Position numbers and translations under genes: made by a program | Part shown: positions 12,741-30,477 of the stretch, in pieces | Layout of the letters: every line of letters starts with the position of its first letter | How positions within the stretch are numbered: the first letter of the stretch is position 1 | Source of the DNA: Perkinsela sp. CCAP 1560/9 | Taxonomy: Eukaryota; Protista; Euglenozoa: Kinetoplastea | Length of the DNA stretch: 64,000 nt | Direction of reading: 5' to 3' | NCBI GenBank assembly: GCA_965644495.1 | Contig: CBFFSA010000011.1 | Location: forward strand, 1-64,000 | Notes under the pieces: model-generated | What the model saw: only the letters and a program-made list of their open reading frames with translations | What the model was told of the DNA's origin: nothing | The model's database searches: none

Positions 12741-13162
12741 CTTCTAGGAAATTGGATGTTCAAGTAGATTTTTGTAGATATTCTTCGTAACGGAACCGTT
12801 TCGTAGGGTGTATGACTCAAGTGTAATTCTTTGTTGGTTCGATGGAATTATGATTACGGAGTTCAATTTATCCGTTGACTCCACTTTACCCGTAGACTTA
12901 AAATGTACACATGCTTATAATTCTGTACTTGTTTGTTTATATTGTAGAACACCTTTTAGTCATAATCTACCTTTGATTCCCTTTTAACAGCCTATAAATA
13001 CATGTATGATATTATGCCTGGTGCTCTGTTCCGTACCGTGTTTGTGTGTTCCATACCTTTTGATCACGGGTTCCGATAATTTTACAAAATAATAATAATA
13101 ACTTACAAATCTTTTTTTTTCGTTTCTTTCTACTGCAATTTTTGTTCGTTTCCTTCTACTGC

Positions 13163-14545
13163 ATGGATGACAGTTCCGATTTGCGTCGCGGCAAGGTTAC
13201 CGCCTTGTTGCTACCCCCAGAGGAACTCCTTGAGCGTTTCATATCAGATGTGGAACCAAGATCAAGGCACCCCACTTGGCGCCTTGCTAAGAAGGGAGTC
13301 TTTGGGCATGTGAAAAGCGTATCGGTATGCACGTGGTATGGGGTGACTTGCGATGCGCAGCATCGTCTAAGAAGGATTCGATGGGATGACATGGGGCTCG
13401 AACGACAGGTACAATGGGAATTCCTACCCCAAACACTAACGGCTTGTAGTTTCCTTAGAAACAGACTTACGGGATCATTGTTACTTGATGCATTACCACC
13501 GCAGCTGACATACCTGCATGTATCGAGCAACCGATTTGGCGATGAGTTATCCTTGACTAATTTGCCGCCTACCACAGAGTCTCTTTGGTTCAATGACAAT
13601 CGCTTTGAAGGAAGCGTAGATCTTACCCATTTACCCCTTCGTCTCTGTGACTTGATAAAGATACAGTTTCTGTACCTTGTTGGTACATTTTCCCTTTAGT
13701 TCATCTTTTCTTTCCCCGGCAACGGGCATAATCTTACTGTTTTATATGCCCGTTGCCGGCCGGCACTAAGGCCGAAACTGTCCCTCTTTCTCGGCGAAGT
13801 AGGGGACGCGCTTCCACGCCATCACCCCTCCCCGGCTCACTCCTTGAGTGGGTTTTCTTCCCTCCCCGGCTTTCTTCCCTTCGCGCCCTTTTATTCCCGG
13901 GGAGCCATGCGCCATGGTGGCCTCCCTTGAGGACCACTGGGCGTGGCTCTGCCTCGTCTTATCGCGAGGCAGCGGTCGGTTGCAGTGCGCCCCTCCGGCT
14001 GCGTAAAGAGGTGGTGAGTTGCCTGGACCACCTCTACCGACTGGGACCGAGTCGGTTGCAGTGCGCCCCTCCGGCTGCGTAAACAGAGGGCGAGTTGCCT
14101 GGACCCCCTCTACCGACCGAGTCCGTGTCGAACCCCCTTGGTGCGACATCCGTCAATACGGATTGTGCCGATGATATCGGCTGTCGCATCAAGGGCTGTA
14201 TCTCTGCGCCAACGAGCGCATGAACATCAAAAACTTGATTACAATGAGCTCTCCGGTGGAGTCGATCTCTCTTGTTTGCCCTACGAAATGAAAACTCTGA
14301 ATTTGGCCTTTAACAGGTTTACAGGACCACTAAATTTGCAGAAGACGCCTCCTTTGCTGGAATTCATTTACTGTCAAAGCAATTGTTTTTCGGACTTGAT
14401 AATGTTTGCTTCGATTCCCAAGGAATTAAAAGCGTTAACCATATACGACAACAAAAATCTTAAGGGCGAAATTAATTTTTCTATTCTCCCGAAAAATTTA
14501 TTTGCAGAGATCACTACTTCAGGAACGGATGTCAAGGTACTGTGA
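13163..14545 (+). pseudogene. LRR protein gene interrupted by a 576-bp insertion
   Basis: C.W.GV.C cap and LP..L..L.L..N.F.G repeats; removing 13655-14230 restores in-frame LCDL-KLDYNELSG. Confidence 0.85.
13655..14230 (+). mobile_element. SL-headed structured non-coding retroposon (SINE-like), copy 1
   Basis: Starts ATAAAGATACAGTTTCTGTACCTTGTTG|GTAC, many hairpins, internal ~75-nt dimer, ends CATCAAAAA; homologous to reverse complement of 27238-27818. Confidence 0.8.
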
Positions 14546-14561
14546 TCATAAAAGTATGAGT

Positions 14562-15240
14562 AGTCACTCATACTGCGCGCTTCGCGTTGAAAACTAACTC
14601 CGCGTTTAACGAAGAGACTAAAAAAGAAAAATCGCCAAAACGTCATGAATAATCTACTTTTTTGGGGGAAAAAGCTCGATTTTTCGGCAAAAATTGCGAA
14701 ATTTTACCCCGAATTTTTGATGCCTTACCAGTACAGTGGGGGCAGGAGTCGAATCTGTCGACAAAAACGTCGTAGAATGGTGACTCTCCGAATATGGTTT
14801 AGGAGTCGATTTGGAAAAATATTCTTTTTACTTTTTCTTAGGTCAAAAAAAACTATTTTTTGGCTATCCCAAAAATTTCGGAATTTTTGACCTTGTCGGA
14901 CCTCGCCCGCGCGTACCAGGGGGGGGACCCCCAGGTGGGGGTATGGAAAGTCATCGCCGCGGCCTACTCTACCACTTCCCTGCGCTCGATTTCGAATATC
15001 AAGATTTTGAACTTTTCAAAAAACGACGTATGCCCCCCTTTGGACTCCCCCCCCATGGACCCCGCCATGGACCCCCCATTTTTTTCAATTCTTTTTTTTT
15101 CAGTTTTGGACCACCGGAGCCCCCTTTTATATTTTTTTCTTCTATTATATTACTGTGTTTCTCTTTATATTTTCACTGTTTTTGTTCACTTTTTTTTCAA
15201 TAATCGAGGGTAGAGCGGTAGTTATACAACCACCGCGATA
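14562..15240 (+). mobile_element. Hairpin-ended repeat element, 5'-truncated diverged copy
   Basis: AGTCACTCATACTGCGCGCTTCGCGTTGAAAACTA matches 105-139; 3' part matches 810-978; stem-loop 15215-15236. Confidence 0.8.
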
Positions 15241-15340
15241 AGTGTCCCTAGGGTCCTTATTATACCCCGCCTCCTACCGCATCAGAGGCAGGTGCAGAAT
15301 TTACAGGACCGTAAATTTGGATATGGGAGGGGTCTAATAT

Positions 15341-24969: not shown

Positions 24970-24985
24970 TTTCTGTACCTTGTTG
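24970..24985 (+). other. Spliced-leader exon 3' remnant at the retrotransposon 5' end
   Basis: TTTCTGTACCTTGTTG, identical to 13667-13682 and similar to kinetoplastid SL CAGTTTCTGTACTWTATTG. Confidence 0.8.
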
Positions 24986-25031
24986 AATCCTTTTTCTTTT
25001 CTCTACCTCTACTCTTCTCTCCCCCCGATAC

Positions 25032-26564
25032 ATGCCCACGACACGACGTCGACGAGGCTACCGGGGGCGCAAGGATTCACCCGGTGGGCCCGATTCCCCA
25101 CCTACCTCGACCTCAGGGGGACGCTCTACCACCCCTCTCAGGCGAGGTTCTAGCCCCCACTTCTCCACCGAGACTGTGGGGCTACACCAGCTCTCTATCG
25201 AGGAGCTGAAGAAGGCGAGGCCGGACCTTGAAGTCCGTGCAAAGACCCCTGTCAAGTCCCGCGCGTGCGACTTCTGTGGCCTCCCCTTTGTGCCCGCCAG
25301 GCGGGATATGTGCTTTTGTGATGCGTGCATTTCCCTTCGAGCGCAGCACAGAAAAGACCTTCGCGCGCGTGCGAAGACGCAAACCCCCGGGATCCCTCCT
25401 CCCCTCTCTGCTTCTTCTCCTAGGTCCTCTCGACACCGGTCGGTAACCCGAAGACCCCCGCGCTCCATCTCTCCTCGGAGCCGCTCCCGGAACAGAGCTC
25501 GCACCCCTCAGGCGAATGCTCCTGCTCCGATCCTGAAGAAAGCGTCAAACGTCTCCTTTGCACCTTTCCCCCAGGCAGACCTCTCCTCTAAGCCCTTCTC
25601 CACCGTCACCCGCATGGGCGGTGGTGACACTGTGGCCCGAGACGAAATGGACAGCGACGGCCCGCCACCCGGTGAGCGGTCGTTACCCCTACCCACAATG
25701 GCACAGCAGTTCAAATCCATGGACGCTGTCCGCCTCAAGCTCCTTCCTGCCCGAACCGGCTCAAATCGCTTTTCCGCGGAGACAGGAAGATGCGCAGTCA
25801 CCTTATGGCTGGCTGTGACCCTCAGCGCCGAACACGACGTAACATCAATGATGGAGAAAGAGGCCCGTGAACGTCGGGCCCTTACACTCGAAGCCGTTTG
25901 GACGCTGCACGACACCCACAAGTCCATCGAGGAGCGAATCTACCTCATTAATGAAGGGTGTTTGGTTTGCTCCGAATGCGGCATTACGCAGCCGCATATT
26001 GTCGCCCTCCAGGCGCATCGCATCAAGGTGCACGGGCCGAAACGCCTAAGGGCTGCGTCACGGGCCCTGCTTCGGGAACACGCCCCGGAAGCGCTCAGGA
26101 TCAAGGCCGATCGCTTCTCCTCCTTCATGGCTCTATATGAGGAGTTCTGCACGATGGAGGCCCACCTCCAAAGGGCACAGGCGAGTGCGATGGCTGGCGG
26201 CCCACCCTGGCCCCAGCCCACTTTTCGTTCTCCCCCTCATCCCACACCTTTCCCCGGGATAGCGACGAAGCTAATCCCCTCGCAGGCTACACCTGCACCG
26301 CCAACCAATCCCCTGGTCGACTCTGTTTCAGAGCCCTTCAAGATCCTACTCGATCTCGGGCCGGAGCGGGCCGGATATGCCACTATCCCCTGCCCCCCGG
26401 ACTCCTCTTTCCAGCACAGTGGGGAACACTTTAGGGGTCCCTGGGGAAAATCTCCTCCTCAAAGACAGCGCTGGCGAAACCACCCCTATCACAGATCGGG
26501 AGGGCCTAGATCGCGCTCAACGAGTAGCGGTCAGCCTGTCCCTACCTCCGTACAACCCCCGTAA
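25032..26564 (+). CDS. Retrotransposon ORF1 (basic, C4 and C2H2 zinc fingers)
   Basis: CDFC-x12-FCDAC; CSEC-x12-H-x4-H; R/S/P-rich. Confidence 0.75.
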   Translation: MPTTRRRRGYRGRKDSPGGPDSPPTSTSGGRSTTPLRRGSSPHFSTETVGLHQLSIEELKKARPDLEVRAKTPVKSRACDFCGLPFVPARRDMCFCDACISLRAQHRKDLRARAKTQTPGIPPPLSASSPRSSRHRSVTRRPPRSISPRSRSRNRARTPQANAPAPILKKASNVSFAPFPQADLSSKPFSTVTRMGGGDTVARDEMDSDGPPPGERSLPLPTMAQQFKSMDAVRLKLLPARTGSNRFSAETGRCAVTLWLAVTLSAEHDVTSMMEKEARERRALTLEAVWTLHDTHKSIEERIYLINEGCLVCSECGITQPHIVALQAHRIKVHGPKRLRAASRALLREHAPEALRIKADRFSSFMALYEEFCTMEAHLQRAQASAMAGGPPWPQPTFRSPPHPTPFPGIATKLIPSQATPAPPTNPLVDSVSEPFKILLDLGPERAGYATIPCPPDSSFQHSGEHFRGPWGKSPPQRQRWRNHPYHRSGGPRSRSTSSGQPVPTSVQPP

Positions 26565-29500
26565 CAACGAGGCGGCCGTTATTTGGGTGTACGATGGATC
26601 CATGCACGGGTTCATTAACGCCCCCGGACTACAGGCGGCCCACAACATCCCGGCCGGTCTGAGTGAGATTCTCGGTATTCCCCCAGTGCTGACTGGAGCT
26701 TGGAAACCTCGTGAATACGAGGAGGGTGTGCTATGGTGTTTCCTCCCTACAGAAACCCTAGTCAGCGAAACGGGATGGACCACTCGGGTTGTCAAATGCA
26801 ATCTACGCAGGGGATGCATCGAGGCAAACCCTGGCCCCAGACACCAGAACCGAGGGTCGCTGGCCTCATCCGCCCCCCAGCCCCGGCAGGCACCGAGCGA
26901 GACTCCGAGTGCCCTCCTCCAGGAGCCCGACACCCCTTCCCCCAGCAGGGAAGGAACTATCATGGAAGGAATCGCGGCTGTGACCTCACCGCAACACCCT
27001 CCTCTCCATGCATCTTCCTCCCATGCTCCGCCTCCGTACTCCCACCGCGCAGGGCCGGACCCCCCCGACATGGCCCCCAGCGCCACGCCCCCTCATACCC
27101 AAGGCGCGGTCACTGAGCAGGGTAAAGTCACGCCTTCCCCGGACAGCCTAGCCCAGCTCCTCGATAGGGGCTCACTACGTAAACTGTACGCAGTCCAATG
27201 CCCCGCGTGGAAAGACTACATTAAGTCTATCTTTTGTTTGTTTATCATGCGCTCTTTGGCGCAGAGATAATCCTCTTAATGCGACGGCCGATATCATCGG
27301 CACATAATCCGCCCACAACGGATGTCGCCAAAGGGGGTTCGACACGGACTCGGTCGGTAGAGGGGGTCCAGGCAACTCGCCCTCTCTTTACGCAGCCGGA
27401 GGGGCGTACTGCAACCGACTCGGTCCCAGTCGGTAGAGGTGGTCCAGGCAACTCACCATCTCTTTACGCAGCCGGAGGGGCGCACTGCAACCGACCGCTG
27501 CCTTGCGATAATGCGAGGCAGAGTCACGCCCAGTGGTCCTCAAGGGAGGCCACCATGGCGCATAGCTCCCGGGAAGAGACAGGCGCGAGAAGAAAAAAGC
27601 CGGGGAGGGAAGAAAACTCACTCAAGGAGTGAGCCGGGGAGGGGTGAAAAGTCGGAAGTACGTCCCCTACTTCCACGACAAAGAGGGACAGTCCCTGCTA
27701 GCCGTCAGCCGGAAACGGGCATTTAAAAGGAAAATGTATGCCCGTTTACGGGAAAAGAAAGGAAGGGCTAGCAAAATGTACCAACAAGGTACAGAAACTG
27801 TATCTTTATAGCGACTTCTTTGTAGCGACTTCTTGGGGAAGTCGCAGGAAGGGAAGACCAAAATCGCCTGGGATCTTCTTCTCGGGGTTAAACGGTTCCT
27901 GTTTTTCCCTGAGGACAAGCTGTCCCAGAGGCAGTTGGCGAGGGAGCTACGGAAACGGGCTCACCTAGAGGGGTCCGAATCCATCGCTCCAAATCCCCTC
28001 CTCACCAACAGCTTCCCCCGTTCTGTTATCAAACGGGTTACCGAGCTGATCCGGGCGGGGGCTTTCTCGAGGGCGGCTAAAATTCTGGAAGCCCCCCTCG
28101 ACCCGCCGGCAAACCCGGCTACAGCGGGGGAACAGGTGAAACGCCTCCACCCTACGGGAGGTCCTTATAACACCCCCAAGTTCGTTTATGAAAAGGAATG
28201 TCATGGACCCCTCCCGTCGGCGGCAGACGTTGTCCGTAAGGCAACTAGCCTTGCGCCGCTTAGAGCGCCAGGCCCGTCCGGATGGACCAAAGAACTCCTG
28301 GTCCCCATCCTCCAGGAGGATGACCCGAGGGACGTGGTCACTTGGATCATCCAAGGGATCCTCACGAACTCCCTCCCTCCCACGATGAGGGATTTCCTCA
28401 CGGGAGCCAACCTCAAGCTCTTTAACAAGCCTGGGGCCCCTGTGGGACATCACTCCTCATACAGGCCCATTGCCATGGGGGAGGTCATCCTGAAGCTCGC
28501 GGGTCTTCTAGCCCTTGAACAGGTCAGAGACCACCTCCCTGCTGTGTTTCAGGGCCTCCAATTCGGAGCCCAATACACGCAAGGATGCGAGCACGTCGTG
28601 TATGAAGTGAGAGATCACTTCCGCGACAGACCCGATGAGGTGATCGTGGCGGTCGACCTGGAAAATGCTTTTAACAGCATTTCCCGCGCGGCCATTTTCC
28701 GAGCCTTGAAAAGGTACCCGAACCTTTCCCCTATGCTCGGGATCTCCCTTTTCGGGTACGGGACCCCTAGCAAGCTCCACCTGGGGGAGGGGATTGCCAT
28801 CCCTAGCTCCCGGGGGGTGAAACAAGGGGACCCGATGGCGCCCATCCTGTTTGCCTTAGGGATTCAGGGGGCCATCTCGGCCGTGGCGCCAAAATACTCT
28901 GGCTGCCTAAAGCTATGGGCATATCTGGATGATATAACCTTAGCCGCGGAGCCCGGGGTGTGCGTAAAGGCCCTTGGCTCCATGGAAGCGGAGATCAAGT
29001 TTTTGGGCTTAAAACTCAACTTAAAGCCTCAAGTGCATGGTGGCTACTCGGCACCCGGACTTGTACTCGGTCTTCTCGGGGAGCAGGATGCAACATGCTC
29101 CGGGGGGGTTCAAGCTTCTGGGGGCGTATATTGGCGCCACGGAAGCGTTTGAAGAGGAATGGGTCCTATCGAAGGTTCCCAAGGTCACAAACTTCTTGGG
29201 TAAGCTGAAGGACTTACCCAGGCAGTGCGCCCTTCCCCTTCTTCGCCTATGCGGGAGCCCCCGGTGGAACTACATAGTTCGTACGCATGAACCGGGGGTG
29301 ACCAAAAAGGCAAACCTTCAGGTAGACGCGGCCATCACCGCATGCTCCGAAACCTTAATCGGGGGGATGGGTGCAATAGGAACGACGCCGTTCGCAAACA
29401 AACTTTTTACGGCGGACTTCCTGGGCACCATCCCCTTCGAAGACAAGGCGGAGGACATGCAGGCCAAAGCCGTCAAGGCCTTACAAGGCCGACCCCCTGG

Positions 29501-30287
29501 CACCCCAGCCAGGGAGCAGCGACGCGCTTATGGGGCGGCGGCTATGGACAAGGCCCCGTCGGCCACGCATCTGGTCTGCATGCGACAGATCCAGAACACC
29601 CACTCCACCAAGTGGATGAACGCGTGGCCGAACAGGCCGGAGTACTACATGCGGGATCCCGAATGGGAGACCGCCGCTAGGCTCCGGTACATGGTGGCCC
29701 CCACCTCCGAACCTGAGATCCAATGTGTGTGTGGCGCAGCCCTCAAAAACGAGGATTTCTGTCTCCATGCCATGGATTGCAAAAAGGTTCGGGGGAAGAC
29801 ACAGGCCTCTCGTCACAAGGGGGTCAAGGAAACCTTCAGGAACCTACTGACCCAGTACGGATTCTGCCCGGACCTAGTCGAACCTAGGTTCGACAACGGC
29901 CGGGGACCGGACATCTGTTTCCTTTTGGGGCGGAAGCTCGTCCTCGTAAACGTGACGGTGGTGAACCCACTGGCACCGTCTTATGTGGACAAGGAGGCAG
30001 CAGACCCCTCCTTCACCGTGAGACAGGCCGAACGCCTCAAAAGGCGTACTCACGAAGAAATGGCGGGGGCCAGGGAGATGGATTTCTTCCCGCTGGCCTT
30101 CACCACTTACGGTGTCCCCGGCCCCGAGACCCTCCAGTTTCTTAACCTGGTCGCTCGGAAGGCCACCGGCGAGAAGAATGGTTGCCTCAGCCACCTCATC
30201 ATGGCAATCGGGGTAGCCATCCAAAAGGGGAACGCCCAGATAGCGCACGCCGCGGTACAAAATTGGTACCGACGGGGCGTGCGCTAA
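26377..30287 (+). pseudogene. Retrotransposon ORF2 (2A-like motif, RT, REL endonuclease), broken by an insertion and a frameshift near 29030
   Basis: APGPSGW, YRPIAMGE, QFG, VDLENAFNSISR, GVKQGDP, AYLDD; CVC-x11-H-x3-C, RH, GPD; excising 27238-27823 fuses KSIFC-SDFLGK in frame. Confidence 0.9.
27238..27818 (-). mobile_element. SL-headed structured non-coding retroposon, copy 2, inserted antisense in the CRE ORF2
   Basis: Minus strand begins ..CGCTATAAAGATACAGTTTCTGTACCTTGTTG|GTAC (27813-27778), ends ATAAACAAACAAAA; TTTGT direct repeat at 27233-37 and 27819-23. Confidence 0.8.
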
Positions 30288-30477
30288 ATGGGCCACGATG
30301 GAAAAAGGAAAAAAAAAATTTGATTGCTTGTTTTAAAATCATACACCCCCCCCAATGGACCTTCATGGTTCATGTATTGGGTACTATAGAGGCAATGCCG
30401 CGTTTCATACTTCTCCCCCCTTATTAATCGCAAAAAAAAAAGAAAAAAATTGACCAATTTTTTTGACCAAAAGGGTA

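Follow-up and report, generated by a model that had tools for sequence, protein, structure and literature searches.

The 64,000-nucleotide window analysed here, the first stretch of a contig of Perkinsela sp. CCAP 1560/9, holds two copies of a unit that is a young, multi-copy, non-coding mobile element and carries at its head most of the exon of the organism's own spliced-leader (SL) RNA gene. We regard it as probably a SINE-like non-autonomous retroposon that parasitizes R2-like LINEs with a restriction-like endonuclease (RLE), copied from an RNA template that would begin with the leader and end in a 3' handle of the LINE type. Sequence searches covered 21 Mb (110 contigs) of the window's own assembly, and all counts given for the family are therefore lower bounds.

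Two insertions in the window and their host genes

Both copies of the unit (13655-14230 on the forward strand and 27233-27809 on the reverse strand) are discrete insertions. They align with each other from end to end at 87-89% identity and represent two subfamilies, A (copy 1) and B (copy 2). The initial annotation, made from the letters of the window, had described two discrete insertions of about 580 nt whose removal restores the host gene. This is confirmed for both copies, as is the position of copy 1, while the interval proposed for copy 2 (27238-27818, reverse strand) had to be shifted to 27233-27809.

Copy 1, which at least 15 other full copies match at 98% identity, has sharp ends and lies in frame inside an LRR gene. 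Its length of 576 nt is three times 192, and translation across the joint shows the LRR frame and the repeat rhythm to be continuous (..LPLRLCDL / KLDYNELSG..) from the upstream half of the gene (13142-13654, forward strand), which ends in ..DLTHLPLRLCDL, to the downstream half (14231-14545, forward strand), which starts with KLDYNELSG. Another high-copy repeat begins directly after the stop codon of this gene (window positions 14562-15300), where contig depth in the DNA runs goes up about 300-fold.

Copy 2 is inserted antisense in a leader-headed, poly(A)-tailed CRE-like LINE (24970-30445, forward strand), recognized by its reverse-transcriptase domain and element ends, whose 3' end has no similarity to the unit. 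The empty site is visible in two paralogous copies of this host LINE (L079 and L080). Compared with them, the extra sequence in the window consists of the unit and a 12-nt stutter at its 5' joint (27810-27821, reverse strand), which repeats 11 nt of the upstream target; apart from the stutter, copy 2 was inserted precisely. The ORF pieces of the host are shifted by one base because 589 bases were inserted, and taking these 589 nt out returns both pieces to one frame. The apparent CGCT before the head of copy 2, which had been read as more of the SL, is duplicated target sequence, since the stutter repeats the upstream target; the second leader variant that it implied ('..CGCTAT..') was dropped on the evidence of the empty site. 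Leader variants AGCGAT and AGCTAT at nt 8-10 are present in other copies. The A-rich tail first attributed to the two copies is not poly(A), as subfamily A ends only in ..CATCAA(AA) and subfamily B in ..GATAAACAAACAAA.

A young and highly structured non-coding family

The family is not limited to these two copies, as the assembly search places it at dozens to more than 80. BLASTN, proposed at the outset as a check on copy number, returned at least 46 matches out of 343 candidates in the 21 Mb, where the head followed by GTA stands at 91 places, all of them dispersed, and the 3' motif of the tail at about 84. Identity between nearest neighbors reaches 99.8% among 36 full copies, and subfamilies A and B are about 13% apart. 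In the DNA runs, contig depth marks the head and body of the unit as highly repeated.

The unit contains chance ORFs and no real one. Its minimum free energy is -254 kcal/mol versus -201 +/- 6 for shuffled sequences (z = -8.5), and this, with the missing ORF and the many dispersed copies, supports its earlier description as a non-autonomous, non-coding and highly structured retroposon. Compensatory changes are found in only 2 of the 157 pairs of the consensus fold because the family is too young. A long hairpin of 14-16 bp (13716-13759, forward strand) has two compensatory pairs (CG to UA and CG to AU) that separate subfamilies A and B. Farther along, a structured unit of about 76 nt is duplicated in tandem (13975-14130, forward strand; self-matches of 89-91%), and some members, such as the 492-nt variants L044, L068 and L072, have it singly. 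Related families have the first 290 nt in common, different middles and diverged last 90 nt. Against Rfam, the window gave nothing at gathering score and the unit and the SL gene gave chance-level matches only, none at E < 0.03 and none to tRNA, 7SL or 5S; Rfam seems to have no kinetoplastid SL RNA model available to match.

The last 112 nt form a 3' module (14119-14230, forward strand) that recurs at 96% identity at the end of a non-coding tandem element 5.15 kb long (L073), the only other carrier of the module. This element (G000:C1:394700-400100, minus strand) repeats head to tail, starts with leader nt 22-37 and ends with the last 112 nt of the SINE, with tails at C1:394837, 399990, 405208 and 406826. 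No reverse transcriptase was found on its own strand. Two different SINE subfamilies (L069 and L071) are both preceded by one 45-nt sequence joined at leader nt 20, which could represent another element or come from a chimeric template.

The head is most of the exon of the organism's own spliced leader

A genuine SL RNA gene is located on contig 1 (L053; G000:C1:660300-662700, minus strand) as two tandem 297-bp repeats, the only genuine SL RNA genes found; a large SL array was not seen in the 21 Mb searched. Its 38-nt exon starts with AACTTTAACGATAAAG and ends in ..CCTTGTTG, its intron starts with GTATGAGAAGCTTCGAAC, and its RNA folds into the usual three stem-loops. A metagenome contig from a relative (L081) agrees with it in the exon and in the start of the intron (GTATGAGAAGC in both). 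The exon sequence is fixed by near-full SL copies at 138 places in the genome, which run from exon nt 2-3 onward and stand before many different retroelement bodies. The leader begins AACTTTAACG here, and the canonical start AACTAACGC followed by CAGTTTCTGTAC, which we had also considered, is absent from the genome.

The first 28 nt of the unit (13655-13682, forward strand) are identical at all 28 positions to exon nt 11-38 of L053 and L081, which bears out the proposal that the head is the organism's own SL exon. The further proposal that the head continues into the SL intron fails, since L053 and L081 go on with GTATGAGAAGCTTCGAAC and the unit with GTACATTTTCC, and only GTA is common to the two. 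Three of the first 11 intron bases agree, and BLAST of the SL repeat against the unit found no similarity beyond unit nt 31. The unit has neither the full 38-nt exon from nt 1 nor the conserved intron (GTATGAGAAGC.. with stem-loops II and III), and it forms no tandem array; as judged from these comparisons, it is not a piece of an SL RNA gene. Likewise, no master copy was seen in an SL array: the 91 heads are dispersed, and the sole tandem SL genes carry the normal intron. A metagenome scan for leader plus GTAC found none, and one contig with a genuine SL gene (L081).

The GTACA of the unit completes a perfect 6-bp hairpin with the leader that mimics the top of SL RNA stem-loop I. The unit reads UGUACC/GGUACA in this hairpin and the SL RNA UGUACC/GGUAUG, a difference of two transitions that turn G.U into Watson-Crick pairs. 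We take this predicted hairpin as no more than suggestive; in the partner LINEs, a conserved GTACTAAC of the 5' regions likewise starts with GTAC.

Three retro-copies of unspliced SL RNA (L062, G000:C2:801574-; L082, C25:23760-24140, minus strand; L083, C20:10770-11150, minus strand) begin at exon nt 3 or 6 and extend to ..GGGGCTTA. An A run comes next in all three, as do short tandem repeats in two of them. Hence, SL RNA itself serves as a reverse-transcriptase template in this organism. A decayed SINE fragment lies about 360 bp from the L053 SL repeats, in the opposite direction.

Joints between leader and body

Most copies (35 of 54) begin at leader nt 10-13. A few reach farther into the leader, to nt 6 (L054 and L018), nt 3 (L055) or, in the old subfamily B copy L084, nt 1; these copies lie at ordinary insertion sites. 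Because a copy cannot exceed its template, these single copies indicate that the template RNA carried the whole leader. We do not claim that a start at nt 11 is specific to the R2-like clade, to which some 'TTT' families with near-full leaders may also belong.

Directly behind the head, the unit has GTAC and a pyrimidine tract ending in AG (13683-13699, forward strand), the GTACA of which pairs in the fold with TGTAC of the leader. In two separate subfamilies (L019 and L021; L046 and L039), the joint with the leader lies 17 nt deeper in the element, immediately past the internal pyrimidine tract and AG, so that these copies read leader/TTCATC. Such joints are exactly what trans-splicing onto a transcribed copy would be expected to give. 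All DNA copies with the usual joint read ..TTG/GTAC, with no AG at that point, and a transcribed copy therefore cannot be re-spliced there. A pattern search of the 21 Mb for a leader-less master (AG/GTAC) found none: the first pattern had 14 matches, 12 of them reading GGTACATTTTCCTTTAG, where GTAC follows a G just as it does at the leader joint; the second had 3 unrelated matches, not above the reversed-pattern control. The head could be kept up over successive cycles by masters outside the searched sequence, by an internal start or self-cleavage, or by re-extension of the cDNA on other leader-bearing RNAs.

Stutters are common at the 5' joints, where a few bases are repeated, either from leader nt 11 onward or from the target upstream. 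They suggest a strong stop near nt 11 at which template jumps take place. Runs of stutters (ATAAAGAT and similar) stand before both LINE and SINE copies (L074:1-110, L003, L008, L015, L041, L043, L049 and L056) and always start from leader nt 11; it looks as if copying had halted at this nucleotide and restarted several times.

The 3' end is held in common with R2-like LINEs

The last 31 nt of the unit (14200-14230, forward strand) consist of ATCTCT, a hairpin (GCGC/GCGC) and ATGAACATCAA, and the same motif (ATCTCT, a hairpin of 4-6 bp and ATGAA..) ends five R2-like LINE copies (L074, L026, L014, L013 and L012). The LINE stems (GCAG/CTGC, GTAG/CTAC, AGTGA/TCACT and ACAG/CTGT) differ from that of the unit and are fully complementary; every stem position varies between copies and pairing is always kept. 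Although the common stretch is short (only about 31 nt), this covariation in the sequences suggests that the motif is likely a handle for the LINE reverse transcriptase. No LINE was found with the full 112-nt 3' module, and crossing unpaired tails with 150 scored reverse-transcriptase places yielded only C10, a LINE followed by a complete SINE.

The LINE at L074 has one ORF of 1609 aa with a reverse-transcriptase domain and zf-RVT, and solved R2 proteins can be aligned with its aa 860-1594. Its C-terminus, read by eye, contains CX2CX8HX4C, RHN, RPD, ELT and KMQKY (KxxKY), the hallmarks of the RLE of R2/CRE-type elements. The C-terminal 250 aa alone, compared with the PDB by sequence, matched no solved R2 chain, so the RLE assignment depends on the motifs read by eye. 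Like R2-type RLE LINEs, the element combines a reverse transcriptase, a CCHC motif, a PD..(D/E)..K motif and N-terminal zinc fingers. Three CxHxCxxKxxCxHxCCK repeats lie in the N-terminal part of the protein (aa 257-405; L074:41-4867); as a candidate DNA-binding module, they could direct the element to its LRR target. The relatives retrieved in a protein search with this LINE were unnamed or were R2-like elements of animals, and none supplied a clade name.

The L074 LINE and the CRE-like host of copy 2 share only 27% identity in the reverse-transcriptase domain. The idea that a CRE reverse transcriptase mobilizes the unit found no backing in the window, since its CRE-like element ends in poly(A) and has no 3' sequence in common with the unit; the match is to another, R2-like clade.

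The unit also resembles the first 100 nt of these LINEs. The likeness comprises the GTAC start, a CCCC..GGGCAT hairpin (at the start codon in the LINE) and a 17-nt block (13919-13935, forward strand) that four R2-like LINE families also carry, at a distance of about 70-90 nt behind their leader, with a 16/17 match to L049 and a 12-nt core common to L074, L036, L041 and L049. Collinear-chain tests of this likeness are statistically weak, ranging from 1/300 to 140/300 shuffles. The GTAC past the leader probably belongs to a LINE-type 5' region, as its place at the opening of GTACTAAC in the LINEs would suggest, pieces of which the SINE would have kept. The middle 200-300 nt of the unit have no counterpart in the LINEs sampled. 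The genome is unusually full of apparently intact retrotransposons; the 21 Mb contain 1072 candidate reverse-transcriptase places, many of them with long open frames.

Insertion sites

About 20 of 52 independent 5' flanks translate right at the joint to ..(V)DLxxLPxxLxxL in LRR genes, and the 3' flanks at these sites continue with xLxxNx(F/L)xG, which defines one phase of the repeat (DLxxLPxxLxxL/xLxxNxFxG). With the motif density of the window, a stretch rich in LRR genes, taken as background, this preference has a chance probability of about 1e-56. Furthermore, an L074-family LINE and the SINE occupy the same codon of two tandem LRR paralogues at L026. In two cases (L074 and L014) the SINE abuts the last base of the LINE, with the LRR site after the pair, and at L004 two units are stacked. 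We infer from these arrangements that the downstream half-site may stay intact and can be cut again. Other copies are in microsatellites and in other elements (copy 2 among the latter); none of the copies takes the fixed position inside SL RNA genes that CRE, SLACS and CZAR use.

Around 27 copies with both ends, no consistent repeat was found that would represent a target-site duplication, which fits R2-type integration. At L074, the LRR gene resumes past the LINE and SINE (L074:5545-5700), and its next repeat holds another leader-headed SINE in the same phase, giving three elements within two neighboring repeats of one LRR gene.

Proposed mechanism and alternatives

The unit RNA would carry the complete 38-nt leader, the structured non-coding body and the LINE 3' handle. 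In the sequence of steps that we infer, the LINE protein would bind the handle and nick a preferred site, either the one phase of the LRR-gene repeats or a position directly behind a resident element, and the RNA would then be reverse-transcribed onto the nick. Copying would usually stop or jump near leader nt 10-13, and template jumps would make the 5' joint, leave the stutters and produce no target duplication. The presence of the leader would reflect a template RNA that starts with it, most probably as a product of trans-splicing, and not descent of the unit from an SL RNA gene.

Descent from an SL RNA gene, which the initial annotation had favored, would make the head an exon plus intron start, with a master under the SL promoter, perhaps in the SL array, giving rise to a capped transcript that is then retroposed. 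We consider this quite improbable. Its adherents could point to the GTACA that rebuilds the top of SL RNA stem-loop I via two transitions, to the unspliced SL RNA retroposed at least three times (L062, L082 and L083), and to the searches for an AG/GTAC master in 21 Mb, which found none in a searched genome that may be partial. Yet the 3/11 agreement with the intron start and the lack of a match to the SL repeat beyond it are poor traces of such a parent, and the 91 heads are dispersed, with a normal intron only in the tandem SL genes. The GTAC could also be accounted for by the partner LINEs, where it opens the conserved GTACTAAC of the 5' regions, and the leader is joined at another point of the same body as well. 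It is scarcely conceivable that the units, as dispersed or orphan SL RNA genes, go on providing trans-splicing with leaders: they do present the 3' 28 nt of the exon and then a GT donor inside a hairpin, but almost all copies are missing exon nt 1-10 with the capped end, they are without the conserved intron and its stem-loops, and they sit inside broken genes in either orientation.

The choice of partner is the other point of divergence. There is a very small chance that the window's poly(A) CRE-like LINE, or another poly(A) family, moves the unit and that the likeness to R2-like 3' ends is convergent or accidental. Such an element does contain copy 2, and leader-headed poly(A) families are numerous, but the unit is devoid of poly(A) and shows no resemblance to the 3' end of the CRE-like element, whose ORF copy 2 breaks in antisense orientation. 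The covarying hairpin and the common insertion site point instead to the R2-like clade.

We thus favor a SINE-like retroposon copied from leader-bearing RNA by R2-like LINEs. A bolder version, which we judge rather unlikely, would make the leader a working part: the R2-like LINE clade and the SINE would use leader-capped RNA obligatorily, the GUAC of the leader would pair with a conserved GUAC at the beginning of the element and so rebuild the SL donor hairpin, the reverse transcriptase would stop or jump at nt 11, and the head would be re-made in every cycle, even though no acceptor AG is present in the DNA copies. If so, the leader and the homing to one codon phase of a protein-coding LRR family would give a site-specific retrotransposon a new means of gaining its 5' end and its target. 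If the favored model is true, a retroelement in a trans-splicing organism can do without its own promoter, and recently active elements are interrupting a large family of LRR genes at one fixed position. The stuttered joints, together with the abrupt halt at leader nt 10-13, would furthermore offer a handle on 5'-end completion by R2-type enzymes.

Relation to known elements

Like other SINEs, the unit is short, non-coding and present as dispersed, near-identical copies, with a 3' end shared with a LINE over about 31 nt; it has neither a Pol III-derived head nor target-site duplications. Known SINE heads derive from tRNA, 7SL, 5S and snRNAs. A full-text literature search found no amplifying non-coding retroposon with a constant spliced-leader head, no report of this leader sequence and no RLE-type elements that home to a protein-coding repeat family.

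By analogy, the unit would be mechanistically closest to SINEs that borrow the 3' stem-loop of a LINE and to R2 SIDEs. The eel UnaSINE1/UnaL2 pair and tRNA-derived SINEs with CR1- or RTE-type tails use the 3' end of the partner LINE as a handle for its reverse transcriptase. UnaSINE1-type SINEs are also short, non-coding and multi-copy, with a stem-loop and tail copied from the LINE 3' end, but the unit differs in its Pol II spliced-leader head, in having no target duplication and in its RLE-type partner (theirs is APE-type). R2 SIDEs, which Eickbush and Eickbush reportedly described in 2012, are said to be short, internally deleted R2 elements in Drosophila. They too are parasites of an R2-type site-specific LINE, with 3' and possibly 5' cis-elements, insertion at the LINE's own site and no regular target duplication. 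In contrast to SIDEs, most of the body of the unit has no counterpart in the LINEs sampled, the target is a protein-coding LRR gene instead of rDNA, and the 5' end is a spliced leader instead of a self-cleaving ribozyme.

Within the kinetoplastids, CRE1/CRE2, SLACS and CZAR (RLE LINEs of the CRE clade) insert in SL RNA genes at one fixed position (PMC12278014). The unit has in common with them the host group, the use of an RLE (that of the partner LINE, since the unit has no ORF) and a link to the spliced leader. However, the leader is their target, whereas here it forms the unit's own first 28 nt in copies outside the SL genes. RIME, NARTc and SIDER are the trypanosomatid non-autonomous partners of ingi and L1Tc and have a Pr77 promoter/ribozyme head (PMC2323293, PMC3383444). 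These kinetoplastid retroposons also share ends with their LINE and differ from the unit in the Pr77 head, unspliced transcripts, partners of the APE-type ingi clade and target duplications.

DNA-encoded leader remnants have a precedent in dinoflagellates, where retrogenes carry relict DinoSL (PMC5585692, PMC6050394, PMC12014239). There as here, a remnant of the trans-spliced leader at the 5' end marks a copy of a processed RNA. The dinoflagellate retrogenes are protein-coding and have poly(A), whereas the unit is not a poly(A) copy of a protein-coding mRNA but a dedicated non-coding element that amplifies, has a LINE handle and prefers one kind of insertion site. Trans-spliced transcripts of transposable elements have also been reported in Hydra (PMC12220107).
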